From Macrostomum lignano (lineage: Eukaryota), in NCBI GenBank assembly GCA_002269645.1, contig NIVC01003240.1, positions 1-64,000 of the forward strand: 64,000 nucleotides of DNA. Reading direction: 5' to 3'. Position numbers and translations under genes: made by a program. The notes beneath the pieces are model-generated. The model was not told where the DNA came from and did not search any database. It saw only the letters and a program-made list of their open reading frames with translations. Below, piece after piece: positions 14,343-59,018 of the stretch (the first letter of the stretch is position 1; each line of letters opens with the position of its first letter).

Positions 14343-15339
14343 GCCTTGTGGTGTGAGCGTGTGTGTGAGTGCATGCCAGAGTACAGTATTGACGCGCTTG
14401 AATGTGCTCAGGACTCAGCGGAACGGGGCAGAATTGCCTCAGCGCTGGCTGTGGGATCATGTGGCCGAAGGTGTTGCACAACTTTCAAAAGTTCCGTAAA
14501 GACAGAACGCTTCAAACTGACAGAAGTTACGATATAGATTTAATAAAAGCTCACGCAGAAACTACAACAGATAAACTGTTAAACATTTCTGACTCTAAGC
14601 AAGAGTTACCACTCCAAATTCTGGATGTGAGCGTCCTTGACTCACCTCCTCAACCCGGGGGGCAAGGCCCATCTGTAAGTTTCAAAAAATTTATATCGCA
14701 ATTTTTTGCTACATTTGCTGTTGTAAAATGCAAATTCATTTTTTCCAACCAAACCCTACGGAAGATCGTGCAGAAAAAATATGAAAAAATGGATTCCTTT
14801 GCGTTCGAAGTTTTTTCTTAAAAATTATTCCACTGATGGACTCAGTGCCGATAGACCTGCAGGAATAAATAAGAGAACAATTTTTCAACTCTTCCCATTT
14901 TAAATAAGTCTTTTTCGGGCAAGCAAAATTCATTTCTCAATCATTTAGAAATTGGAAATTCAAGATGAAAATTTCAATCAAATACACTAAATACTACTGA
15001 CTAAGTCTTGTTAGTAGTGCATGTCGAACATTAAGCTTGAAGAAGTATTTTTAAAGCAACGTAAATCTTAATTTGTCAAGTTCCTTTTCAATTTGCGTAG
15101 TAACCTTTTTCTTCCTTTCTGCTTCGTCCGCTCTGAAATTCGTTTTTTGCTAAGAAAAATAATGAGAGACAACTGTGTGAATCGTAGGTCTGCTCCACAG
15201 GACAAGCTGGAGCTTTGCTATTCACTGTTATATCCAGCTTGGCAGCTTGTCTTCTGCTGGCTCTCTACAGCCTGCGTCGCGATTGAGATGCCTAAGTTTA
15301 TTGCAAATCCTGGTGGATAGATTGAGCATTGAGTTTGAG

Positions 15340-16086
15340 TGTGAGTATGAGCATGAGCATGAGCATGAGCATGAGCATGAGCATGAGTATGAGCATGAGT
15401 ATGAGCATGAGCATGAGTATGAGCATGAGCATGAGCATGAGTATGAGCATGAGCATGAGCATGAGCATGAGTATGAGCATGAGCATGAGTATGAGCATGA
15501 GCATGAGTATGAGCATGAGCATGAGTATGAGCATGAGCATGAGCATGAGTATGAGTATGAGCATGAGTATGAGCATGAGTATGAGTATGAACATGAGTAT
15601 GAGCATGAGTATGAGTATGAGTATGAGCATGAGCATGAGTATGAGCATGAGCATGAGTATGAGCATGAGCATGAGCATGAGTATGAGCATGAGCATGAGT
15701 ATGAGCATGAGCATGAGCATGAGTATGAGTATGAGCATGAGTATGAGCATGAGTATGAGTATGAGTATGAGCATGAGCAGGAGTATGAGCATGAGTATGA
15801 GCATGAGTATGAGCATGAGCATGAGCAGGAGTATGAGCATGAGTATGAGCATGAGCATGAGCATGAGTATGAGTATGAGCATGAGCATGAGCATGAGCAT
15901 GAGCATGAGTATGAGCATGAGCATGAGTATGAGTATGAGCATGAGCATGAGCATGAGTATGAGTATGAGTATGAGCATGAGCATGAGCATGAGCATGAGC
16001 ATGAGTATGAGCATGAGCATGAGTATGAGTATGAGCATGAGCATGAGCATGAGTATGAGCATGAGTATGAGCATGAGCATGAGCAT
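15340..16086. repeat. (GAGCAT/GAGTAT)n hexanucleotide array
   Basis: Directly visible; source of the HE/SM/CS/ML pseudo-ORFs. Confidence 0.95.
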
Positions 16087-16694
16087 ACAGTAAAGACGTA
16101 CCAGCCTCCCATTTGCCCCTCATCTGAAAGCTCAGCTCAAATTATGGATATTTTTAAAAGCAATTGATGAGTTGCCATTGCTCGCTAGTATTTTATATTT
16201 CAGCGCACAAAGGAAGAGGATTAGTGGATTAGATTAGCCATCTTGCTTTTAGCTTTGATGCTTTCAAGCAAACGGAAATGGAACACCTGATGCAGTGCGG
16301 CAGCACCTGCAGCCAAGCCGCCCCCAGCCTCACACTTACACCCGACAGGACATACTGTCTTCTGCTTTCAAATCCGTTCGCAAAATAGGCAATCAAAATT
16401 TCTGGCAGAGCAAATTTGGAATTGGGATTTGTTTGTAAGTGGGATAAAAATAGCTGCACCAGAGTGGGGAAATCAAGGGAGAATGCGTGAGAGCAGACAG
16501 TGACGATACTCAGCTGATACTTAGAAATATTGACTCTGCAAATTAACAATTTTTATTAAAACAATCGCAACTGCAACAGGAATTGTCGTGCAATTCACAG
16601 CCATGACGGCCAGCCCCCTAAGGCACAGAGAGTGCACATGCCTGACGATTAGAAAGTCAGGGCCGCTGTGCACCCTGTGTGAACGTGTGATCAT

Positions 16695-17021
16695 TTATCC
16701 ACAAATATTCACCAACTATTATCAGTTATCCACAAATATCCACCAACTATTATCATTTATCCACAGATATCCGCCAACTATTATCAGTTATCCACAAATA
16801 TCCACTAACTATTATCAGTTATCCACAAATGTCCACCAACTATTATCAGTTATCCACAAATATCCACCAACTATTATCAGTTATCCACAAATATTCACCA
16901 ACTATTATCAGTTATCCACAAATATCCACCAACTATTATCAGTTATCCACAAATATTCACCAACTATTATCAGTTATCCACAAATATTCACCAACTATTA
17001 TCAGTTATCCACAAATATCCA
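16695..17021. repeat. 31-bp minisatellite
   Basis: Unit TTATCCACAAATAT(T/C)CACCAACTATTATCAG. Confidence 0.9.
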
Positions 17022-17431
17022 CCCCAATTACCAGCTAAATGCATATCTGCAATGAAATCGAGTTGAAAATGAATTGCTGTACTTTTATGTCACAAGACGA
17101 GCGCGAATGCGAGTCAACGCACACCTTTATTGAATTGCAGTTAGCGGGCATCTCAGAGGCCGCTAAGGATGTTGCAGAATTAGCATTTGTCAGAAGTGCA
17201 GAATACAGTAAGCGGCTGGCAAACAGAAGCAAAGAGAACAGTACAGTACAGCGTTAGTACAGTGGGACTAGATGTTGGTAAAAGTACTTTACGAGCGTAC
17301 TTTGGTTTGTAATAGACAATAGGGTAATTTTATGGGGTCCATGGCAGTATTAAAGTTTCCTGAGAGCGCAAAAAATTATAGGGCTTCCGTGGATTGGGTG
17401 TTAGATGTTTGGGGTGTCATATATTGGGGTT

Positions 17432-18010
17432 TTAGATGGTTGGGGTGTCAGATGGTTGGGGTGTCAGATGGTTGGGGTGTCAGATGGTTGGGGTGTCAGA
17501 TGGTTGGGGTGTCAGATGGTTGGGGTGTCAGATGGTTGGGGTGTCAGATGGTTGTGGTGTCAGATGGTTGGGGTGTCAGATGGTTGGGATGTCAGATGGT
17601 TGGGATGTCATATAGTTAGGGTGTCAGATGGTTGGGATGTCATATAGTTGTGGTGTCAGATGGTTGGGGTGTCAGATGGTTGGGGTGTCAGATGGTTGGG
17701 GTGTCAGATGGTTGGGGTGTCAGATGGTTGGGGTGTCAGATGGTTGTGGTGTCAGATGGTTGGGGTGTCAGATGGTTGGGGTGTCAGATGGTTGGGGTGT
17801 CAGATGGTTGTGGTGTCAGATGGTTGGGGTGTCAGATGGTTGGGATGTCAGATGGTTGGGATGTCATATAGTTAGGGTGTCAGATGGTTGGGATGTCATA
17901 TAGTTGTGGTGTCAGATGGTTGGGGTGTCAGATGGTTGGGATGTCAGATGGTTGGGGTGTCATATAGTTGGGTGTCAGATGGTTGGGATGTCATATAGTT
18001 GGGGTGTCAG
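17432..18010. repeat. 16-bp G-rich minisatellite
   Basis: Unit GATGGTTGGGGTGTCA. Confidence 0.95.
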
Positions 18011-18378
18011 ATCGAACAGAATTCTGTCAGAAGATAGATTGGGGTGTCAGGTAGGACGCGGCAGAAGCCACTCACATGTAGTTGTGGGGAGGGTAACATT
18101 AACACAGGCTAATAGTACATTACAGATTGCACTGTTGCAGTGCTAGCAATGAGCATTCTAAAAATTGGCGACAGGAATTAACCGACACAAAATTGTTTGG
18201 ACAACTACGTGCGCCACGGCCGCATTTAAAAAATTTTGATTTTTAAAAAAATAGCGATTACTTCAAGCGCAAAGCACAATAATTGGAATAAATTATAATT
18301 TTTTTGAAGCGTTTAGCAGGAAAAGAACTTATGATGTTTTCAAATTTTTAAATTAATAATTCCTGGAAAAATAATGCA

Positions 18379-20860
18379 CCACCCATGAGCTCACCCATGA
18401 CATCTCATGAGCTTATGAATGATATCTCATGAGCTCACCCATGACATCTCATGAGCTTATGAATGATATCTCATGAGCTCACCCATGACATCTCATGAGC
18501 TTATGAATGATATCTCATGAGCTCACCCATGACATCTCATGAGCTTATGAATGATATCTCATGAGCTCACCCATGACATCTCATGAGCTTATGAATGATA
18601 TCTCATGAGCTCACCCATGACATCTCATGAGCTTATGAATGATATCTCATGAGCTCACCCATGACATCTCATGAGCTTATGAATGATATCTCATGAGCTC
18701 ACCCATGACATCTCATGAGCTTATGAATGACATCTCATGAGCTCACCCATGACATCTCATGAGCTTATGAATGATATCTCATGAGCTCACCCATGACATC
18801 TCATGAGCTTATGAATGATATCTCATGAGCTCACCCATGACATCTCATGAGCTTATGAATGACATCTCATGAGCTCACCCATGACATCTCATGAGCTTAT
18901 GAATGATATCTCATGAGCTCACCCATGACATCTCATGAGCTTATGAATGATATCTCATGAGCTCACCCATGACATCTCATGAGCTTATGAATGATATCTC
19001 ATGAGCTCACCCATGACATCTCATGAGCTTATGAATGATATCTCATGAGCTCACCCATGACATCTCATGAGCTTATGAATGATATCTCATGAGCTCACCC
19101 ATGACATCTCATGAGCTTATGAATGATATCTCATGAGCTCACCCATGACATCTCATGAGCTTATGAATGATATCTCATGAGCTCACCCATGACATCTCAT
19201 GAGCTTATGAATGATATCTCATGAGCTCACCCATGACATCTCATGAGCTTATGAATGATATCTCATGAGCTCACCCATGACATCTCATGAGCTTATGAAT
19301 GACATCTCATGAGCTCACCCATGACATCTCATGAGCTTATGAATGATATCTCATGAGCTCACCCATGACATCTCATGAGCTTATGAATGATATCTCATGA
19401 GCTCACCCATGACATCTCATGAGCTTATGAATGATATCTCATGAGCTCACCCATGACATCTCATGAGCTTATGAATGATATCTCATGAGCTCACCCATGA
19501 CATCTCATGAGCTTATGAATGATATCTCATGAGCTCACCCATGACATCTCATGAGCTTATGAATGATATCTCATGAGCTCACCCATGACATCTCATGAGC
19601 TTATGAATGATATCTCATGAGCTCACCCATGACATCTCATGAGCTTATGAATGATATCTCATGAGCTCACCCATGACATCTCATGAGCTTATGAATGATA
19701 TCTCATGAGCTCACCCATGACATCTCATGAGCTTATGAATGATATCTCATGAGCTCACCCATGACATCTCATGAGCTTATGAATGATATCTCATGAGCTC
19801 ACCCATGACATCTCATGAGCTTATGAATGATATCTCATGAGCTCACCCATGACATCTCATGAGCTTATGAATGATATCTCATGAGCTCACCCATGACATC
19901 TCATGAGCTTATGAATGATATCTCATGAGCTCACCCATGACATCTCATGAGCTTATGAATGATATCTCATGAGCTCACCCATGACATCTCATGAGCTTAT
20001 GAATGATATCTCATGAGCTCACCCATGACATCTCATGAGCTTATGAATGATATCTCATGAGCTCACCCATGACATCTCATGAGCTTATGAATGATATCTC
20101 ATGAGCTCACCCATGACATCTCATGAGCTTATGAATGATATCTCATGAGCTCACCCATGACATCTCATGAGCTTATGAATGATATCTCATGAGCTCACCC
20201 ATGACATCTCATGAGCTTATGAATGATATCTCATGAGCTCACCCATGACATCTCATGAGCTTATGAATGATATCTCATGAGCTCACCCATGACATCTCAT
20301 GAGCTTATGAATGATATCTCATGAGCTCACCCATGACATCTCATGAGCTTATGAATGATATCTCATGAGCTCACCCATGACATCTCATGAGCTTATGAAT
20401 GATATCTCATGAGCTCACCCATGACATCTCATGAGCTTATGAATGATATCTCATGAGCTCACCCATGACATCTCATGAGCTTATGAATGATATCTCATGA
20501 GCTCACCCATGACATCTCATGAGCTTATGAATGATATCTCATGAGCTCACCCATGACATCTCATGAGCTTATGAATGATATCTCATGAGCTCACCCATGA
20601 CATCTCATGAGCTTATGAATGATATCTCATGAGCTCACCCATGACATCTCATGAGCTTATGAATGATATCTCATGAGCTCACCCATGACATCTCATGAGC
20701 TTATGAATGATATCTCATGAGCTCACCCATGACATCTCATGAGCTTATGAATGATATCTCATGAGCTCACCCATGACATCTCATGAGCTTATGAATGATA
20801 TCTCATGAGCTCACCCATGACATCTCATGAGCTTATGAATGATATCTCATGAGCTCACAT
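18379..20860. repeat. 44-bp satellite, about 56 nearly identical copies
   Basis: Unit CACCCATGACATCTCATGAGCTTATGAATGATATCTCATGAGCT (two related 22-bp halves); degenerate tail to about 20930. Confidence 0.97.
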
Positions 20861-21176: not shown

Positions 21177-23067
21177 TCACATCAGGTCGCAGCGAGGTCG
21201 CCTCCGCCTTCGCAGCTTACGCGTCGGCTTCAGGAAGTACAGCTTCCGCTTAGTGCAGACGAGAATCTTGTCCTCGCCTAGCGGCGCAATGCCCGTGATG
21301 TCCGCCAGCTCCTGCAGGAACTCCAAACGCTGCACAAAGATGAACTCGCTTCGCCGGATGATCCAGAACACCCGCTGGCGCTGGTTGTCGGTGAAGATAA
21401 TTCGCTTATCGCTGGTAGTGATGATGTGCGCAGGCACAGAGTCGAATATCTGCGTGGTCGTGAGCTTCCTGTACACCCCCGTGCGGTCGTTCACGATGAG
21501 AATGTGACCCTCCGACGGACAGGAGACCCACAGCATTCGGCGCTCTCTAGTCCAGGTCACGTGATGCGGATGCAAATTCTCGAAGGTGAACCAGTGTCCG
21601 GTGCGGGCCAGGGCGGGGGTGAGGAACTCGACCTTCTGATCGGCCGGCTGCGCCACCACGAGCTCACCGCGGCGCTCGTCGACGTGGAAGCCGGCGAACA
21701 GCGGCTCATCGCTGCCGGCAGCGGCTCCAGGCCGTTCGAGGCGGCGGATCACAAGACCGTCGAGCTGAACGCAGGCGATCGCTGACGTCCAGCGGGTGGC
21801 GGAGTCGCTGGGCACAACGCCGCTGACGTAGACGAGCCCGTTAGTGAAAGTCATGTAGTAGCAGCGCATACGGTGACCGCCCAGCACAACGGGGAAGTCT
21901 TTCAACCGACCGTCCTGGCTGGAGTACAGCAGCAGAGAGTGGCTGCAGGAGTTCAGCAGGATCATGTCTACCTGGTCCTCCGGGTCGGCGATCAGGCCGG
22001 CTGCGCCGATCTCCAGGCCGGCCCCGGGATGCTGGAGGTCCAGAAAGCCGGTCTCGATCTCCTTCAGCTTGTAGCTGCTGTGCCGGCGCATGTTGTGCCG
22101 GATGAAGCTCAGGTCGAGCGCGTCCTCCTCTTCGGCCTCCTCCGAGGACTCGTCTGAAGTTGCGTCGTCTCGCGGATAGCGGGACGGAAGAGACGGCGGC
22201 TGCTGGTGCTGCTGCGCCGTGGCCGATGGCAGCGGCGGCGGAGGCGGCGGCAGCGGCTGCCTGGCGTCGCGTCCTCTTCGATTCGGCTGCGCCGGGTTGC
22301 CCAGCTTCCCTCTGGTCGCCCCGTCCTCGGCGTCCAGCCGGCTGATCAGCTTGTTGAGGTTCTCTCGGACAGCCAGCAGTTCGGCGCGGTCGAAGGCGTC
22401 CCGCTCCAGCTCGGACCGGCGGACGAAGTCCTTGGCCAGATGAGCGAGGATCTCCTGCTTTCGTTCGAGGCTGCGCCTCCGCGTGGAGCTCCTGGCGCAG
22501 ACCGGACTGTCGCCACCCAACGACAGCTGCAGCCGACGGCAGTGCCTCTCGGCGATGTAGTCAGCGATGGACTGGTGAGCGGCCGCCGTGGGCAGGGCTC
22601 GAACTCCGTCCGGCGGCAGGCGAACGGACACGCGACAGAGCGGACAGGCCAGGCTGCCGTGCGAAGCCGGCACCTGTTGCTGCTGCTTCTTCTGCTGCTG
22701 CTGGCTCTCCCAGCGGGCCAGGCACGCAAGGCAGAACACGTGCGAGCAGGGCAGCAGCCGCGGCTGCGACAGCTGGCCCAGGTGGATGGCGCAGGTGGTC
22801 AGCTCCTCCAGCTGTTCCACGCTGCCGCTCGAGTCTTCGCTCGCTGAATCGGCGCCGTTGCCGCCGCCGCTGCCGTCGCCTTCGCCGCCGCTGCCGAGGC
22901 CGGAGCAGCTGTCGAAGCTGCCTCTCCGCGTGTTGGAGCTCTCCTGCGTGCGGAGATTTGCGCGAAGCACTCAGAATAGCCCCAGGCCAAACTGTACACT
23001 TGGCTAACGAAGTCGCTTTCTAAGGGAAAAGTGCTTAGAAGCACTCACCGCCTGCCTCCCCTGTCAT
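21177..23067 (-). CDS. RING-finger + NHL-like beta-propeller protein (TRIM-NHL-like E3 ubiquitin ligase without B-box)
   Basis: ORF 21177-22970 has RING pattern CAIH...LPCSHVFCLAC...CPLC and a C-terminal ~300 aa of beta-strand/Gly-Asp repeats. The ORF has no ATG before the RING. The best start model is mini-exon 23067-23049 (ATG ACA GGG GAG GCA GGC G|GTGAGT) spliced to 22969 via a weak GAG acceptor; an alternative phase-0 acceptor CGCAG gives an exon start at 22943. Confidence 0.85.
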
Positions 23068-23883
23068 TATTCGTGTCCTGAGCTCTCCTCAGTCCTTTCT
23101 AGGTCTGCAGCTGGGATAATTTTAGGGCCACGCCGGCAGCTCTTTGAGAATCATTAGAGACCTTGAAGGCAGGATTCTAGAAGTTGCAGGCCTATATTTA
23201 TCCTGTCAGCAGTGATGTACTTAGTCGGGAAGGCTCTTTAGTCTGAGCAGCAGTACAAGGAATGGGAGATCAATTCCCGTGACTGACACTTCTGCACGCA
23301 TTCCTTTCTCAGCTTCCCAATGACAAATTTGGCCTCAGGTGAGGCTTGCCCAACTCTGGGGATGGCGCTATGGAGATTTGAGTCTGGCCGAGCGGCGCTA
23401 TCCGCAGATCGATGCGGCTAATGCGCTACTAAAAATATCCAGAGCGCGTGAAATTGTCTGCCAGCCCGAATCTGCGAGAGACGTGCGCGCGCGTGACTGC
23501 GGCAGCCCCGCTACCCCCCCGTCCTGCCCAGCGCTTCTTCGTATTAATTACTGTAGAGGCCTTGTATCCATCATCTTGGCTGCTGCCACTGCGGACTTCA
23601 AAGGGCGGTTTCTAATCCACCGATGGGACCCATTTAATATAGCGAGTACTCCGCAATCCCGCCCTCTCGGTTGCCGCCTCGGGGCCTCCGGTGCACTCAG
23701 TTCGTTCAAAGATTGCACCGCTGGGACAAAGCTGGGGTTGGGAATTGAATGTGGGCTTCACTGGCTGATTGAATTCAGTTCTGGCCTCAGTGCATCCGGG
23801 TGAGCTGCTAGAATGGCAATTAGTGAACTCTGAATTTACGTAAGGCTTTTCTACCCTCTGAAATCCGTGCTGCTCACATCCCT

Positions 23884-24187
23884 GTGACATCAGCAACCGG
23901 TAACACTGACATGACGTCAGCAACCGGTAACACTGACATGACATCAGCAACCGTTAACACTGACATGACATCAGCAACCGGTAACACTGACATGACGTCA
24001 GCAATCGGTAACACTGACATGACATCAGCAACCGGTAACACTGACATGACGTCAGCAACCGGTAACACAGAATTCCTTGTGACATCAGCAACCGGTAACA
24101 CTGACATGACGTCAGCAACCGGTAACACTGAATTCCCTGTGACATCAGCAACCGGTAACACTGAATTCCCTATGACGTCAGCAACCC
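23884..24187. repeat. 27-bp minisatellite
   Basis: Unit TGACATCAGCAACCGGTAACACTGACA, with some 30-bp variants. Confidence 0.9.
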
Positions 24188-24553
24188 GTAATGCGAACAT
24201 CCGTATGACAGGAAATGATGGAGCTGACTGATAACCTCAGTGATAGAAAAGTGCCTTTTGCTCCCGACAGCCTCTGCGGCATCAAAAACCCGCTACGCTG
24301 AGGACACTCACCAGGTCCAAGGAACCGGTCCTAACCGGATTGAGTCGCTTCTGTATCCGGCCGGCCGAACAGGCAGCCCCGGCAGTCTCCATGCAGCGAT
24401 CGGACAAGTGGAAGGCTGTGCACGTGTGGGCGGCGGCAAAGCAGGCAGACGGGGAATTCAATGCCTGACTTTCCTTCTAAAACAGCCTTATTTTAAGCTC
24501 GTTTTTCTCGTTAGGAAAAAAACTCGCATTTGCCGCCTTTTTATTATCTCCAT

Positions 24554-25540: not shown

Positions 25541-26040
25541 CATTAACCCAACATCGATCCTTGTAGACTTCTCATCATTGCAGCATCACATGCATTAACC
25601 CAACATCCTTGTAGACTTCTCATCATTGCAGCATCACATGCATTAACCCAACATCCTTGTAGACTTCTCATCATTGCAGCATCACATGCATTAACCCAAC
25701 ATCGATCCTTGTAGACTTCTCATCATTGCAGCATCACATGCATTAACCCAACATCGATCCTTGTAGACTTCTCATCATTGCAGCATCACATGCATTAACC
25801 CAACATCGATCCTTGTAGACTTCTCATCATTGCAGCATCACATGCATTAACCCAACATCGATCCTTGTAGACTTCTCATCATTGCAGCATCACATGCATT
25901 AACCCAACATCGATCCTTGTAGACTTCTCATCATTGCAGCATCACATGCCTTAACCCAACATCCTTGTAGACTTCTCATCATTGCAGCATCACATGCATT
26001 AACCCAGCATCCTTGTAGATTTCTCATCATTACAGCATCA
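25541..26040. repeat. 48/52-bp minisatellite, about 10 copies
   Basis: Unit CATTAACCCAACAT(CGAT)CCTTGTAGACTTCTCATCATTGCAGCATCACATG. Confidence 0.92.
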
Positions 26041-27393
26041 CAAACTATAACTTAGCATCCTTGTTCATCCTTGCGAGCTCTTACCTACAAGGACCACCAG
26101 GAACACTAGTAGTTCTTGGCTTTTACATCATCGTGAGTTCTTTCACCCGTCGTGAAGTCTTAAATCCTCGCGACTTCTACATCTTAAACACACGCGGAAA
26201 CGTGTACCCCTGGTCGGCTTACAAGGTAGGCAACTTGGGGGGGGGGAGTATGCGGCCTCCAGAGGCAAATAGAGGGTTGCCGAACTCCCGCCGCAAGCCT
26301 TGACCTTGAACTTGAATAGGGTGCGAAGCGTGAAGCATCGCAGACCATAGCCATTAGTCCAAGTCTATCACATACTTCACAGGCATACTGAAACGTCATT
26401 GCGGGCCATACTCGCTACTTCTACATGCTCTTTACATTCACAAACCCTGTGACTTATACATCCGCGTGAGTCCTGTCCTTGTGAATTCTGCGTCATTATA
26501 ACATCTACATCCTCTACTTCTTTACTCTGTTATACGGTTTTGCTCTTGACTCATGAATGACTCGTACACTCTCTTGACTTCCTCATCCTGTGCTGTCCTA
26601 GAGTATTTACATTAAGTGAAAAAATGCCGAAAGGAAATAGTGCAACTCGCGAGTGAGTCATGAGACTCAAAGACGCTCTAAGACGCCCGATAGTATTTGA
26701 GTGCAGCTCACGGAGGGCTCACAGCACGGTCTCAAAAAAGCCAGGCTTCAGCATCCTTATGGGGGATATTGTGTACCCAACTCTCGTAGATAAGATTAAT
26801 GCCTATCCATATACGAATAGGGATCCCTCGATATCAAAGTGCCCAATGTACTAATTGGAAAAATCGATATTTTTCGCACAACTCCTTCGAAGCGTTAAAA
26901 CTGCGTGTCCGGGTTTTGCTCGGATCTGCTCCCATTAGACTCATTATTGCTCCGGCCAGTTCAGCTAATCAGCTTAAACTAGCTGCCTAATGCACTGATC
27001 AGTTTCCTAGCTCTATTATTGTAGGCTACTCTTTGCAGGCTAGCTCGTAAAAGCCCGCCCATTAGCATAACTGCTCTTTGATTTAGCTAGCGATCTGCTT
27101 CAGCGACTCGGCCTGCCGGAGACTGCATGACTGGATAATGCCAAGCAGTGAATGCAGGCAAATATGAGCAGTGTTCGGGGGCCTGTTCGGGGCCTCAATT
27201 GAGTTCGTGCGCATGCTAAATAGCTATTATCGTTCAATCTATCAATAGTTGTTGACTGCATCCTGATATGCACTCTAGTGTCACCTCACACAGCATTGCA
27301 CTGGCCTCTGACTTACTGTTCCAATTTACAGCTCTGTCTCCAGCTATAAGCTGTTAGCTGAAGACCACTCTCTCTTGTGTCTCTGTCTTCCTC

Positions 27394-30136: not shown

Positions 30137-30140
<4 letters not shown>
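29853..30140. repeat. 28-bp minisatellite abutting the end of the plakin-like CDS
   Basis: Unit ATCATAGTCTCATTTCCAGCTGCTCATA. Confidence 0.92.
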
Positions 30141-39814
<9,674 letters not shown>

Positions 39815-49480: not shown

Positions 49481-49919
49481 GTCTTTTTCATGTTTGATTT
49501 TCACTTTTTTACTTTAATTAACAGGAGCAACATGGTAAAGAATAGGCAAACGAATCTAAATCAATCATAGCTGGAGTGATTGGTGAAATTTGACTTTGTC
49601 TGTCAGTTCTACTGTACGAGTGTGTTTGTAAATTTGGTCTAACCAATAAATATAAAGCTGGCTACTTCTGCTTCTGAGCATCGTTGTGTATACAGTAATT
49701 AATCTCTCCTTTTTATTGTCTTCTATTTAATCTAGATCTGCATAAATCGTTCATTGTAAAAAGCGATATCTTTGGAAAATAATTTCCAGCTGTTGCAACT
49801 AGAAAGAAAATTGTGTGTTTAATCGGGATTAGTGGAGGTTATATACTCTTAGACAGGATTTAATAAGATTATTTGTCCTTTCCTGTTCCCGTGCATTGGT
49901 AATTAGCATTGGCGACTGG

Positions 49920-50700
49920 CCAGTGTGCTCAGAGGTCTCTGCCATCAAGATTCCCAGTGTGCTCAGAGGTCTCTGCCATCAAGATTCCCAGTGTGCTCAA
50001 AGGTCTCTGCCATCAAGATTCCCAGTGTGCTTAGAAGTGTCTGTCATCAAGATTCCCAGTGTGCTCAGAGGTCTCCGTCATCAAGATTCCCAGTGTGCTC
50101 AGAGGTCTCCGTCATCAAGATTCCCAGTGTGCTCAGAGGTCTCTGCCATCAAGATTCCCAGTGTGCTCAGAGGTCTCTGTCATCAAGATTCCCAGTGTGC
50201 TCAGAGGTGTCTGTCATCAAGATTCCCAGTGTGCTCAGAGGTGTCTGTCATCAAGATTCCCAGTGTGCTCAGAGGTGTCTGTCATCAAGATTCCCAGTGT
50301 GCTCAGAGGTCTCCGTCATCAAGATTCCCAGTGTGCTCAGAGGTCTATGCCATCAAGATTCCCAGTGTGCTCAGAGATGTCTGTCATCAAGATTTCCAGT
50401 GTGCTCAGAGGTGTCTGTCATCAAGATTCCCAGTGTGCTCAGAGGTCTATGCCATCAAGATTCCCAGTGTGCTCAGAGGTGTCTGTCATCAAGCATTCCC
50501 AGTGTGCTCAGAGGTCTCTGCCATCAAGATTCCCAGTGTGATTAGAAGTGTCTGCCATCAAGCATTCCCAGTGTGCTCAGAGGTGTCTGTCATCAAGCAT
50601 TCCCAGTGTGCTCAGAGGTGTCTGTCATCAAGATTCCCAGTGTGCTCAGAGGTGTCTGTCATCAAGATTCCCAGTGTGCTCAGAGGTGACTGTCATAAAG
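49920..50700. repeat. 34-bp minisatellite
   Basis: Unit CAGTGTGCTCAGAGGT(C/G)TCTG(C/T)CATCAAGATTCC. Confidence 0.95.
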
Positions 50701-52101
50701 ATTTTCTGCGTGCTTTGGTCCCTATATATGGTCAAACTATAGTGCTATCGTAAGAATACATTTCAAATGAGGTTGTAAACAAATAAACGAGGTATAAAGC
50801 ACGTGCTCACATCACGAAAGAGGGAACAGTAAGATAAATATAACGGATAAAAATGCCCGGAGCTGAGTTCACCTGATAATATCGGGAATGCTGCTGTTTC
50901 TCTTTTTTCTAGATATGAATATGCGCTAACTAACGTGTTATTGCAAGGAAAAAAACGATACGTATCAACATTTCGTACAGTATGGCTATCGCAGCTAATA
51001 TATGAAATTGACATTATTTCATAACAGAACAATATAACAACTATTTCAATCTGAGGGGGTTACTTCGCCTTTTGCAGCGAAATCTGTTGACGATAAAATG
51101 GCTCCATGGGTTCCTGGGTAGCCATGTAAACTAATGTGAAAGGGGTTAACTTCTCTCCCAAAAGCTGACCCCAAGTTGTTACAGGGCTGACCTAATCTCA
51201 GCTGTTCTCACCAATTTTTACGTAGGGTTATCTTCTAATGTGATATCTTGATGTACTTTTTAACACTGTACTATGTACTGGTAGTGTATCAGGTAAAGTC
51301 AATAGCGTATTATGTATTATTGGCCTGAGCGGTCTTTATGGCTAGTGCTAGTGCTAGATCTAGTGCTAGTGCTAGTATAAAGCACTAGCCCTGAGGCTGA
51401 TTATCAATTTCGTCTCCAAATATGATAGTTGGAGAGGTACCAAGAACTCAATTGAGCGTGAGAAGAAACCAGGATCAAAAGAGTTTATTTTATTTGGCTT
51501 GCAGTCTGCTTCTATTTATACTAAGAAATGCCCTTACTGTTTAAAACGAAATTATGGGATAATAAATAATTTTTTTATTCGTAAAGTTTAAGTACCGTTT
51601 TCTAAGAAGTGCAAATTAAGCCTACTTAACTAAGCCACCTAGTCACATGTTGGACCTTAATGTGAAAGAACTTTTAAGATCCTGCAAATGGAAAAGGCTC
51701 TGTGGAGAAAGCAACCAACCAGACCATATATTCTACTGCCTGCTACCAGAGTTCAAATCTCAGCATAGGGCTTGTGAAACCGTAGGATTTCTAAACACGG
51801 TGGTAATGGTATGTCAACATCAGTGTCAAGAGAGGGGAATTTTACGTCTTCCTTCAACGGTGAATTTGATATTTTTACAGGTAGAGCTGGCGATGTTGAC
51901 AAACTAGTCCTGGTCGAGTTTCGCCTTCGAAAATAGCGAGCGTAATCGTCAGCGTAGCGTTTGTACTAGCGAGGAGCACCACAAAGGAGAGCCATCCCTA
52001 GTTCTTTTGCTTGTTTTGTTCCATCTTTGAGAGAGCACAAAGGCACAAACCTTGAGCGCGCCGGATTGCTATTGGGAAGTTTCAAAGACCTTAGGGTAGT
52101 G

Positions 52102-54837: not shown

Positions 54838-55851
54838 GACAGTGATGCGATTATCGAGGCTAAAACAGAGCTCCACTTTCTTGAGTGGATATAATAAAAT
54901 TCGGTCGTATTTCAGTTGGAGCAGCCCCTGATTATATTAGCCAATACGCGATCAGGGAGGAGCCCAGCCAATCAATTTGGGTAGCTTAGCACTACGGAAT
55001 TAACTGGCCAGAGGTCTCTCCATTGTAGAATCGAAGTAATGCGCGGCAAATGAGGAAAAATTGTGTGAGCCCAGCTCGGCTCTCTCTAGGCCCGCACTTG
55101 GAGCGGTAATAAGTGGAGCGAACGCCGATGCGGTCTCTGCTTTTATCGTGCGCATATCTGATTAGGGCGAAGCCGACGCCTTGGCCAAGTTCTTCCGCTG
55201 GCCTCCAGCTTGTTGGGATCGAACAAAACGCAGCAAACCGGTTTACTTGGTTTAACAAATGAATGCCGAAAAGTTGAAGCCACATCGAAATGTACTTTTT
55301 TCGTTCTTTGGCTGGCTTTGATCGATCTATTTTTTTCACGAGCTAGTCAAGCGCTTATAACTGCTTATTCGTGTGTGAATAATCTAGTTAACTGAATGCG
55401 TTTAGGCTTATATGGTTTCAATGACTTCCTTAGTATATCCCTGGCTTAACATCGTGAGTGATTAGAGCAGGGGTCGAAAATCTTTTTTTTCACCTCGGAG
55501 GGCAAGATAAAGAATTCAGCCGATGCCCATGGCTACGGATGAGAAAAGAAAGACGAGAAAATACACTGGTAGATTATTTGAGATGGGAGAGAGGGGAGAG
55601 AGGAGAGAGGAGTGAAGAGAAAGAGCTGAGAAGAGACCATAGCCGGACTACTACACGATTATGAAGTTTCAAAGGCTTCGCCGATAAAGAGGCTTCGCTT
55701 GCCGGAGAGTTTGCCGACCCTTGGAGTAGAGTCTTGTTTACTCATTCTGATACATTGAAACACTTGATTCCAGCTCTGTGATTGCGCAAAGTTTCAGAAC
55801 AGTAACTTGTCCGCCTCTATACGTACCTCTAACAGTCTGTAAGTATGAGCT

Positions 55852-57835
55852 CTAGCCTCTATCTCGCTTATCTCCCTGCCTCTACCTCGCTTATCTCCCT
55901 GCCTCTATCTCTCTTATCTTCCTGTCTCTATCTCGCTTATCTTCCTGTCTCTATCTCGCTTATCTCCCTGCCTCTATCTCTCTTATCTTCCTGTCTCTAT
56001 CTCGCTTATCTCCCTGTCTCTATCTCGCTTATCTCCCTGCCTCTATCTCGCTTATCTCCCTGTCTCTATCTCGCTTATCTCCCTGCCTCTACCTCGCTTA
56101 TCTCCCTGCCTCTATCTCGCTTATCTCCCTGCCTCTACCTCGCTTATCTCCCTGCCTCTACCTCGCTTATCTCCCTGCCTCTACCTCGCTTATCTCCTTG
56201 CCTCTACCTCGCTTATCTCGCTTATCTCCCTGTCTCTATCTCGCTTATCTCCCTGCCTCTACCTCTCTTATCTCCCTGTCTCTATCTCGCTTATCTCGCT
56301 TATCTCCCTGTCTCTATTTCGCTTATCTCCCTGTCTCTATCTCGCTTATCTCCCTGTCTCTATCTCGCTTATCTCCCTGTCTCTATCTCGCTTATCTCCC
56401 TGTCTATCTCGCTTATCTCCCTGCCTCTACCTCGCTTATCTCCCTGCCTCTATCTCGCTTATCTCCCTGCCTCTACCTCGCTTATCTCCCTGCCTCTACC
56501 TCGCTTATCTCCCTGCCTCTACCTCGCTTATCTCCCTGCCTCTACCTCGCTTATCTCCTTGCCTCTACCTCGCTTATCTCGCTTATCTCCCTGTCTCTAT
56601 CTCGCTTATCTCCCTGCCTCTACCTCTCTTATCTCCTTGTCTCTATCCCTCTTATCTCCCTGTCTCTATCTCGCTTATCTCGCTTATCTCCCTGTCTCTA
56701 TTTCGCTTATCTCCCTGTCTCTATCTCGCTTATCTCCCTGTCTCTATCTCGCTTATCTCCCTGTCTATCTCGCTTATCTCCCTGCCTCTACCTCGCTTAT
56801 CTCCCTGCCTCTATCTCGCTTATCTCCCTGCCTCTACCTCTCTTATCTCCCTGCCTCTACCTCGCTTATCTCCCTGCCTCTACCTCGCTTATCTCCCTGC
56901 CTCTACCTCGCTTATCTCCCTGTCTCTATCTCGCTTATCTCCCTGTCTATCTCGCTTATCTCCCTGCCTCTACCTCGCTTATCTCCCTGCCTCTATCTCG
57001 CTTATCTCCCTGCCTCTACCTCGCTTATCTCCCTGCCTCTACCTCGCTTATCTCCCTGCCTCTACCTCGCTTATCTCCCTGCCTCTACCTCGCTTATCTC
57101 CTTGCCTCTACCTCGCTTATCTCGCTTATCTCCCTGTCTCTATCTCGCTTATCTCCCTGCCTCTACCTCTCTTATCTCCTTGTCTCTATCCCTCTTATCT
57201 CCCTGTCTCTATCTCGCTTATCTCGCTTATCTCCCTGTCTCTATTTCGCTTATCTCCCTGTCTATCTCGCTTATCTCCCTGCCTCTACCTCGCTTATCTC
57301 CCTGCCTCTATCTCGCTTATCTCCCTGCCTCTACCTCTCTTATCTCCCTGCCTCTACCTCGCTTATCTCCCTGCCTCTACCTCGCTTATCTCCCTGCCTC
57401 TACCTCGCTTATCTCCTTGCCTCTACCTCGCTTATCTCCCTGCCTCTATCTCGCTTATCTCCCTGCCTCTACCTCGCTTATCTCCTTGTCTCTATCCCTC
57501 TTATCTCCCTGCCTCTACCTCGCTTATCTCCCTGCCTCTATCTCGCTTATCTCCCTGCCTCTACCTCTCTTATCTCCTTGTCTCTATCCCTCTTATCTTC
57601 CTGTCTCTACCTACAGTATCTCCCTGCCTCTATCTCTCTTATCTTTCCGCCTCTACCTCTCTTATCTTCCTGTCTCTACCTCTCTTATCTCCCTGTTTTT
57701 ATCTCTCTTATCTCCTGGTCTCTACCTCTCTTATCTTTCCGCCTCTACCTCTCTTATCTCCCTGTTTTTATCTCTCTTATCTCCCTGTTTTTATCTCTCT
57801 TATCTCCCTGTTTTTATCTCTCTTATCTCCCTGTC
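55852..57835. repeat. 23-bp pyrimidine-rich minisatellite with an internal ~540-bp duplication
   Basis: Unit (T/C)CTCTA(T/C)CTCGCTTATCTCCCTG; a diagnostic variant recurs at 56641 and 57184. Confidence 0.95.
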
Positions 57836-59018
57836 TCTAAAGCACTGTCTTTTAATCCTAATCGATTAATATCTTTTTAAAAGAATGACCCGTCTATTTT
57901 TTTTTCTGGCAGCCTAATTAGCTTTGCGCGAGCATCTTGTATGCGATGTAGAGCATTCTCCCCTCCCCTGCTTCCCTCTCCTGGGAAATAGCAGAAATTT
58001 CCTATTTGCATTGCCGTCTGTGTCACACTGTACAAGTCAAGCCTGCCCATCCTCTCCTATCAGCGGATTTGCGAAATATTTTAGTACAAGTTGTTCTTTA
58101 ATTTAGTTTGGCCAGACCGCCCCCGCTAGCAGCCTGTCCGGTCAATTGTAACCGGCACAATATAGAAATTTGCATCCCAATAGGCTTCAACTGAAAGCGA
58201 AGCGGAAAGGAGAGAAGGTCAATCTCAAATGAAGCTCAAACGCGCTTCATCCCGGATGGAAGATGGGGGCGGCAGATCCAGTCCCTGGGGGGGGGGGGTG
58301 GGGGCGGCTCGCTCAGTCGCGAATAATAATAAGACTTTTTGTCTTCAAAGTAAAAATACTCGTACAACCGACACTTCAAAGAGACAAAAAGCAGTGCCGT
58401 TTATAATTAAGCCTCTTTAAACCGCTCTGGTGTGGCGGAGGGTGGGGGCTGCTAGACTGATTGAAGGACCGTTCACAGCGCTAGACTGACTCGAGGATTT
58501 CTCTCTTTTTAACCTGAGCTGTTTTGCTCGCGGCGATTCTAATTACTGATCATGAAAACATTATTATGGCGGGCCAGGAGGCCAACCAAGCGACAACGTC
58601 CTAAGTTATCTGATCCACTTTTTAGGCGCTTTCCCCTAGGGGGGAGTCTCACTTTCCTACTCTTTCTACTCGGCTGTCTTCTCTTCTTCATTATAGCGTC
58701 TTGAGATGCTTCTAATTATTGATCCGCAAAGCACACACTCGCAAGAACGAATATATAATACACGCTCGTAATAGCACTAGCTGCTATCGATGATGGGGCC
58801 TGAAAGCCGGACAGGATGGCTGACTGACAGAATTGCTATGTCTCTCAGACGCCAAATACGCGCTTTGTGCTTTGTTCGCGTGCAAAAATTAATTAAATTG
58901 CTAGCTTGCATTGTAGCTGAGAACATTGATCGTATCATTACAGGGATAATTTCATTTCAATACATATTATAGTTCATTACATGCATACTAGCTAGGAGTG
59001 TTCGGGACGGGGTAGCTA

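Follow-up and report, generated by a model that had tools for sequence, protein, structure and literature searches.

The window analyzed here is a 64,000-nucleotide stretch of the genome of the flatworm Macrostomum lignano (assembly GCA_002269645.1, contig NIVC01003240.1, positions 1 to 64,000). On its minus strand lies a two-exon gene (exon 1, 24392–24312; exon 2, 22943–21177) whose spliced product of 615 amino acids is, letter for letter, the annotated M. lignano protein BOX15_Mlig004309g2, with matching coordinates on the same contig. The protein joins a RING finger, a helical region and a six-bladed beta-propeller, and it ends in an arginine-rich tract that runs directly into a CaaX box (Cys-a1-a2-X), the C-terminal motif of prenylated proteins. 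From these features, and from the conservation of the CaaX box in a small family confined to flatworms, we propose that a lipid anchor probably holds these ubiquitin ligases at membranes.

The mechanical call of open reading frames (ORFs) had given a frame at 21177–22970 with a GTG start, which is really exon 2 of the gene; because it offered no in-frame ATG ahead of the RING, an upstream exon was sought. Comparison of the closest database protein (P0001) with the window by tblastn placed residues 1–29 of that protein at 24392–24306, and the spliced translation and the annotated gene range agree with an exon 1 at 24312–24392 (minus strand), made up of the ATG and 26 further codons (METAGAACSAGRIQKRLNPVRTGSLDL) and followed by the donor GTGAGT. 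The intron (22944–24311, minus strand) is of the GT...AG type and in phase 0, its acceptor CACGCAG ending at 22944 in phase, and it contains a 27-bp tandem repeat (23879–24191). The coding part of exon 2 (21180–22943, minus strand) supplies 588 codons, residues 28–615, up to the TGA stop codon at 21177–21179, where similarity to the paralogues also ends. An alternative first exon, with an ATG at 23066 and a following GTGAGT, was rejected, its phase being wrong for the acceptor and tblastn having put exon 1 at 24392–24312. A second contig (L002), 97–99% identical at the DNA level, carries the copy annotated as g3.

The first-pass annotation had read the end of the protein as a basic stretch followed by CDLM and a stop, and the DNA bears this out: on the minus strand, the codons from 21230 to 21177 are AAG CCG ACG CGT AAG CTG CGA AGG CGG AGG CGA CCT CGC TGC GAC CTG ATG TGA and translate as KPTRKLRRRRRPR-CDLM-stop. 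The polybasic tract KPTRKLRRRRRPR (21192–21230, minus strand, residues 599–611) has Arg or Lys at 9 of its 13 positions, with no acidic residue and no Cys, the nearest Cys upstream of the tract being at -26, within the propeller. The CaaX box, C612-D-L-M615, occupies 21180–21191 (minus strand) and is recognized by its sequence, by conservation in the family and by scores in yeast screens (see below). In a structural model built with AlphaFold2 (AF2) on a 16-sequence family alignment (mean predicted local distance difference test, pLDDT, 75.9; 293 residues at 90 or more), confidence drops over the last 18 residues and falls below 50 for the last 13, which lie beyond the last propeller strand. 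The tail is thus predicted to be disordered, and the Cys of the CaaX box to be preceded by a flexible, accessible linker.

Judging from the way the paralogues differ, this tail is translated. The window copy and a paralogue 59% identical to it (L001) use synonymous codons within the tail (Arg CGT/AGA, Leu CTG/TTG, Arg CGA/AGG, Arg CGA/CGT and Cys TGC/TGT), both terminate right after the CaaX box, and directly past the stop the two sequences cannot be aligned. This pattern indicates purifying selection on the protein to its final residues, and the stop stands in one register across three M. lignano paralogue groups. The tail codons do contain a donor-like GTAAGC (ACG CGTAAGC). As a splice donor it was ruled out, since the paralogues preserve the amino acids downstream of it by means of synonymous changes. 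A 1.8-kb Logan contig from a relative has no poly(A) tail and for that reason was not called cDNA.

The extent of the family was established with a HMMER profile of the C-terminal 315 residues, scanned against all 1.84 billion representatives of the library at E ≤0.001. This exhaustive census returned only 15 matching proteins, and every named representative belongs to the Platyhelminthes: M. lignano, Trichobilharzia szidati, Opisthorchis, Clonorchis, Spirometra, Sparganum, Cichlidogyrus casuarinus and Protopolystoma xenopodis. The other representatives come from short contigs or are sequence-archive entries. Word-indexed profile searches yielded three proteins each, the first of these searches having probably been swamped by low-complexity words, and added a single protein (P0034), so that the census rests on the HMMER scan. 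The family is confined to flatworms, parasitic species included. M. lignano itself has three paralogue groups (Mlig004309, Mlig023823/015500 and Mlig013350), each in two or three near-identical copies in assembly GCA_002269645.1 (Mlig004309g1–g3, Mlig023823g1/015500g1 and Mlig013350g1–g2; loci L001, L002 and L004), a copy number in keeping with the genome duplication of M. lignano.

To compare the ends of these proteins, we anchored at the C-terminus the 12 representatives that fall outside a parasite-type (trematode/cestode-type) subgroup. All 12 have a Cys at exactly -4, so that the question whether orthologues and paralogues keep this residue, posed when the tail was first noticed, has a positive answer for this part of the family. 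At a2 only L, I, V or F occur, at X there is L in eight representatives, M in two, A in one and S in one, and a1 varies freely (D, L, E, V, N, R, S). The window protein, with its near-identical copies (three annotated, g1–g3), ends in CDLM; M. lignano paralogue group 2 ends in CLIA in both copies and group 3 in CELL, every near-identical copy retaining the CaaX box of its group. Elsewhere in the family the ends are CVVM (P0004 and P0022), CNFL (P0005), CNIL (P0023 and P0007), CRIL (P0006), CNLL (P0008), CNLS (P0014), CSLL (P0015, from the monogenean Protopolystoma) and CNVL (P0016 and P0034). Some members carry an extra Cys beside the box, either directly before it (CCVVM, in P0004 and P0022) or in a C-E-C context (CECNFL and CECNIL, in P0005 and P0023). 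The positions just upstream, from -17 to -5, show a pairwise identity of 10.5%, Cys makes up 3% of the residues of these proteins, and in the 16-sequence alignment just nine columns reach a conservation of at least 90%, the Cys of the CaaX box being one of them. On these figures the recurrence of Cys at -4 is beyond chance.

Freedom at a1, hydrophobic residues at a2 and a narrow choice at X together match the specificity of the CaaX prenyltransferases. The residues permitted at X are M, S, Q, A or C for farnesyltransferase (FTase) and L, F, I, M or V for geranylgeranyltransferase I (GGTase-I), rules that we took from PMC10320760 and PMC11304957, the latter giving the GGTase-I consensus as Caa[L/F/I/M/V]. 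The window protein accords with them, having Cys at -4, Leu at a2 and Met at X. Yeast and human FTase are closely alike in specificity, motifs that end in Met being farnesylated or, alternatively, geranylgeranylated (PMC11152559), and a polybasic stretch upstream reportedly enhances such dual specificity (Hicks et al. 2005, as cited in PMC11152559). For CDLM itself, the yeast Ydj1-CXXX data set gives a Ydj1 heat-map (HM) score of 3.48, above the cut-off of 3 that its authors found to match known prenylation best (PMC10320760), and a Ras-reporter HM score of 11.4, against 16.2 for CALM and 0.48 for CAAD. These scores indicate that CDLM would be farnesylated and then, as on the canonical route, cleaved and methylated, and we consider it highly likely that the CaaX box is functional.

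Two parts of the original reading of the tail need to be narrowed to the member in which they were made. Farnesylation had been predicted from the C-a-a-M pattern, and this stands for CDLM, where X is Met and geranylgeranylation is also possible; most relatives end in Leu, and for them geranylgeranyl is predicted over farnesyl. Likewise, the likeness to K-Ras, a polybasic tract joined to a CaaX box, holds for the window protein and does not hold as a feature of the family: a dense tract is restricted to two M. lignano paralogue groups, the closest ones, where Arg/Lys account for 9 and 8 of the 13 residues before the Cys (the 8 being those of the paralogue, KPVRKLRHRKRSK).

The RING finger (22632–22793, minus strand, residues 78–131) has the pattern C-x2-H...C-x-H-x2-C-x2-C...C-x2-C-R and is identified by Pfam, by a structure match, by AF2 and by the family alignment. 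Pfam scores it at 28.4 bits for zf-RING_UBOX (cut-off 25.2) and 24.9 for zf-C3HC4 (cut-off 21), the only domain that Pfam detects in the protein. All eight zinc ligands of the cross-brace are present (C78, H81, C93, H95, C98, C101, C127 and C130), the best sequence match among solved structures is the RING of TRIM2 (E=4.6e-7), and AF2 folds the domain at residues of about 72–142 with pLDDT above 90. The second zinc ligand is His throughout the free-living members (C-A-I-H, region of 22785–22793 in the window), whereas in the family alignment several relatives from trematodes and cestodes have Asp there (C-P-I-D); His or Asp at a place where Cys is usual is an uncommon RING variant that marks the family. 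The Ile of C-A-I-H, the Trp of CLARW after the sixth ligand, and the Pro and linchpin Arg of CPLCR are all there. From RING–E2 structures, we take the Ile after the first Cys, the Trp after the sixth ligand and the Pro of CPLC to be E2-contact positions. CP-x-CR recurs in nearly all members whose RING is in the alignment. We consider it very likely that the window protein is an active ubiquitin ligase.

Between the RING and the linker that precedes the propeller, AF2 gives helices only. Three long ones (22311–22583, minus strand, residues 148–238; pLDDT 56–74) form a putative coiled-coil or dimerization region, and no B-box was matched by Pfam in the window protein (E up to 1) or found among the families common to the 16 members. 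A disordered linker rich in Pro, Gln and acidic residues follows (22146–22310, minus strand, residues 239–293; pLDDT below 50), then a helix at residues 294–314, modeled with good confidence, and then the propeller (21219–22076, minus strand, residues about 317–602), which has 24 strands in six blades of four, with pLDDT mostly above 90. Foldseek against the PDB returned six-bladed propellers at probability 1.00, among them the NHL domain of Brat (template modeling score 0.66–0.68, normalized by target length), TRIM71/Lin41, Mei-P26, Thin and NHL-2, together with virginiamycin B lyase and Pizza6, a designed protein derived from NHL. By sequence, no member of the 16 is matched by Pfam NHL (PF01436) even with E allowed to rise to 1, and with a family profile of the propeller the NHL chains of Thin, TRIM71 and NHLRC2 come up as weak matches (E 0.03–0.2). 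The propeller is NHL-like in its modeled fold only. The label of RING-NHL ligase given at first sight is thus sound for the RING, which exceeds the Pfam cut-offs, and for NHL it holds at the level of fold and fails at that of sequence. With NHL confined to the fold and no B-box, this is therefore not a canonical TRIM-NHL protein. It probably derives from that type with loss of the B-box, lies outside the definition of that family, and is fairly described as RING plus putative coiled coil plus NHL-like propeller.

Put together, these elements suggest a single-chain RING E3 ligase held by an isoprenoid at the cytoplasmic face of a membrane, a combined model that we regard as likely. FTase would alkylate Cys612, farnesyl being predicted from X = Met; because of that same Met and of the polybasic stretch upstream, GGTase-I is a possible alternative. 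Rce1 would then cut off the last three residues, -DLM, and ICMT would methylate the new C-terminus, leaving a prenyl-Cys methyl ester that, with the nine adjacent Arg/Lys, could bind acidic phospholipids. The most probable target would be the inner leaflet of the plasma membrane, as for K-Ras4B, and to the plasma membrane as destination we give about even chances. Once there, the helices would probably dimerize the protein, as they do in TRIM proteins, E2~ubiquitin would be brought in by the RING, and substrates close to the membrane would be picked out by the six-bladed propeller.

Several observations weigh against this model. One comes from the parasite-type subgroup, where five representatives (P0009–P0013) lack a canonical CaaX box: that of Trichobilharzia, one further contig, and those of a Spirometra/Sparganum cluster, of an Opisthorchis/Clonorchis cluster and of Cichlidogyrus. 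Their C-terminal ends read SCLNLCGKL, SCLK, CCSWPS, DCTSIFSC and RHKVSM. These are longer, insert-rich proteins with low-complexity inserts in the propeller, and most of them retain the aligned Cys in a wrong register; independent annotations agree on the ends within Opisthorchis/Clonorchis, and likewise within Spirometra. It follows that either the anchor is dispensable in some lineages or the 3' gene models are wrong: the anchor may have been lost or replaced, or a last exon may be unannotated. To the same side belong the lack of conservation of the polybasic tract, members other than the two closest paralogue groups having one to five basic residues in the 16 before the Cys; the resemblance of the tract to a nuclear localization signal; the Ydj1 enrichment factor of CDLM, which is just 1.16; and an exact look-up of the 615-residue protein, which found the genome contig only and no cDNA or RNA-seq contig for the 3' end.

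The alternative that fares best, which we nevertheless think unlikely, keeps the CaaX box in use and takes the arginine tract as a nuclear or nucleolar signal, so that the protein would sit at the inner nuclear membrane, by the logic of lamin B, or on endomembranes. The stretch RKLRRRRRPR does fit a classical monopartite basic import signal as generally understood, and a tract that is not conserved next to a CaaX box that is conserved would allow targeting to vary between members. There is also a precedent, in that lamins join a nuclear localization signal to a CaaX box (PMC2288919). We saw no other nuclear feature in the protein, however. In known proteins, moreover, a polybasic run abutting a farnesylated Cys, as in K-Ras4B, directs binding to the plasma membrane.

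Less probable by a clear step is the idea that the C-terminal Cys serves S-palmitoylation alone, metal binding or a disulfide, and that the look of a CaaX box is coincidental. It draws on the parasite-type relatives that hold one or two Cys near the end outside the CaaX register (CCSWPS, DCTSIFSC and SCLK), and on the neighboring extra Cys of CCVVM and CECNFL. Against it stands the pattern itself, since an exact -4 register, hydrophobic residues at a2, few residues at X and any residue at a1, found together in 12 of 12, are what prenyltransferases require and are unneeded for palmitoylation or metal binding; the prediction, moreover, has the tail disordered and set apart from the folded part.

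The concern that Asp at a1 might lower prenylation, voiced in the first-pass annotation, can be extended to a third alternative, that CDLM is a poor substrate, the protein mostly unmodified and soluble, and the family trait decaying in this paralogue. The modest enrichment factor could be cited for it, as could the finding that a1 affected modification by human GGTase-I in humanized yeast (PMC11152559). In the yeast FTase screens, by contrast, a1 is the most tolerant position and gave the fewest negative patterns, charged residues being excluded at a2 (PMC10320760). CDLM exceeds the HM cut-off, with a high Ras HM score, and its Ydj1 enrichment factor lies above those of the proven canonical substrates CVIA (0.41) and CVLS (0.49), both of which that reporter under-scores. 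An acidic a1 also recurs in the family, as Glu in the CELL paralogue, and CDLM is kept in all three near-identical copies. Given the screen scores and the Glu of that other paralogue, the concern about Asp is unsupported, and we hold this explanation to be very improbable.

That the tail is absent from the mature protein, through an error of the gene model or splicing at GTAAGC, is scarcely credible: the sequence ACG CGTAAGC looks like a 5' splice site, and no cDNA is among the look-up matches, but conservation with synonymous changes runs beyond GTAAGC to the Cys and similarity ends at the stop, whose register is common to the three paralogue groups, an independent annotation ends on the same base, and relatives on short contigs of 1.6–2.4 kb likewise end in CaaX and a stop.

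The DNA around the gene is rich in satellites. A tandem repeat of 44 bp (CATGAGCTCACCCATGACATCTCATGAGCTTATGAATGATATCT) starts about 320 bp downstream of the stop codon and fills 18384–20858 with 56 copies at 99% identity; the matching 44-bp array on the contig of copy g3 is only about 270 bp long, so that the two copies of the duplication have arrays of very different size. Five more minisatellites flank or interrupt the gene, at 15323–16086, 16690–17023, 17396–18012, 23879–24191 (the one in the intron) and 25541–26042, with periods of 18/42, 31, 16, 27 and 52 bp. Most long ORFs near the gene are translations of satellites, and the neighboring long ORFs are without an informative Pfam domain.

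Farther away, a 2-kb (TGTC)n array at 37720–39756 and, at 55855–57839, some 87 copies of a 23-bp repeat explain why the composition profile of the window shows extreme AT and GC skews, and a 674-residue ORF at 55845–57869 is a read-through of the latter array. A GC-rich stretch on the minus strand (30137–32038) holds an ATG-initiated ORF of 633 residues without a Pfam match, containing about seven tandem copies of a unit of some 50 residues (including ECGAF.DF…GVRAAEKP), which may be an uncharacterized repeat-protein gene. On the plus strand, an ORF at 49896–50753 weakly matches the BspA-type leucine-rich repeats of Pfam (LRR_5, E=6.7e-8).

The membrane on which a ubiquitin ligase is located determines its possible targets. 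If the combined model is true, the flatworm protein would be a compact and genetically tractable membrane-restricted ligase, with RING, propeller and CaaX anchor in a single chain. The variants of the anchor, together with the lineages that have none, would form a natural series in which one could ask how anchor type sets substrate range. M. lignano is a flatworm model in which transgenesis works, and the prediction is testable in the native organism. A broader reading, to which we grant a small chance only, is that these are ligases private to flatworms and derived from TRIM-NHL proteins, in which the anchor has diversified as among Ras isoforms and has been secondarily lost in trematodes and cestodes, and which perhaps bind RNA. 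The variants may in that case comprise farnesyl plus a polybasic tract (CDLM and CLIA), geranylgeranyl (CxxL), and prenyl plus a palmitoyl-Cys (CCVVM and CECNFL). Should the NHL-like propeller have kept the RNA binding of Brat and TRIM71, these would be lipid-tethered RNA-binding ligases in which control of mRNA at the cell cortex is linked with ubiquitination; we know of no description of a lipid-tethered RNA-binding ubiquitin ligase.

Among known systems, the TRIM-NHL ligases (TRIM2/3, TRIM32/Thin, TRIM71/LIN-41, Brat, Mei-P26 and NHL-2) share with the flatworm family an N-terminal RING, a helical region and a six-bladed C-terminal propeller; unlike them, the flatworm proteins have no B-box, no Pfam NHL signal, a His or Asp as second zinc ligand, and a CaaX tail. 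NHLRC1/malin, as generally known, also has a RING followed by a six-bladed propeller of the NHL type, with no B-box, but it differs in that its NHL repeats are recognizable and that it lacks both a long helical region and a CaaX box, and the HMMER scan detected no sequence relationship to malin or to anything beyond flatworms. The tail has its closest counterpart in the hypervariable region of K-Ras4B, where a basic run without palmitoylatable Cys likewise stands directly before a CaaX box ending in Met. The flatworm tail departs from it in using Arg and not Lys, in having Asp at a1, and in belonging to a ubiquitin ligase and not to a GTPase. By the same analogy, the second signals of the family, a polybasic tract or what may be a palmitoyl-Cys, would resemble the alternatives found among Ras proteins.

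Single-chain RING ligases held at membranes by a lipid are familiar from ZNRF1/2, MGRN1, RNF11, NEURL1 and rapsyn, which are N-myristoylated. To our knowledge, the lipid-anchored single-chain RING ligases are of this N-myristoylated kind; they too are single chains held at membranes, but their lipid is a myristate at the N-terminus and their architectures are unrelated to that of the flatworm protein. A literature search of the searchable library found no paper joining NHL domain, RING and CaaX, a broader one found no prenylated RING ligase, and a search for Mlig004309 returned nothing.

Further parallels are FBXL2 and FBXO10, prenylated (geranylgeranylated) F-box components of ubiquitin ligases (PMC9988375, PMC11042265). 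FBXL2 also uses a palmitoyl-Cys adjoining its CaaX box (PMC9988375), and by analogy the CCVVM and CECNFL relatives might do the same. Prenylated ligase components are thus already known, and the flatworm family introduces no new principle; what we did not find in the literature is the union of RING, propeller and CaaX box in one chain. FBXL2 and FBXO10 resemble the flatworm protein in being ubiquitin-ligase components taken to membranes by a CaaX box. They differ from it in being substrate receptors of the multi-subunit SCF ligases, built on leucine-rich repeats or other folds, whereas in the flatworm protein RING, propeller and putative anchor are parts of one polypeptide.

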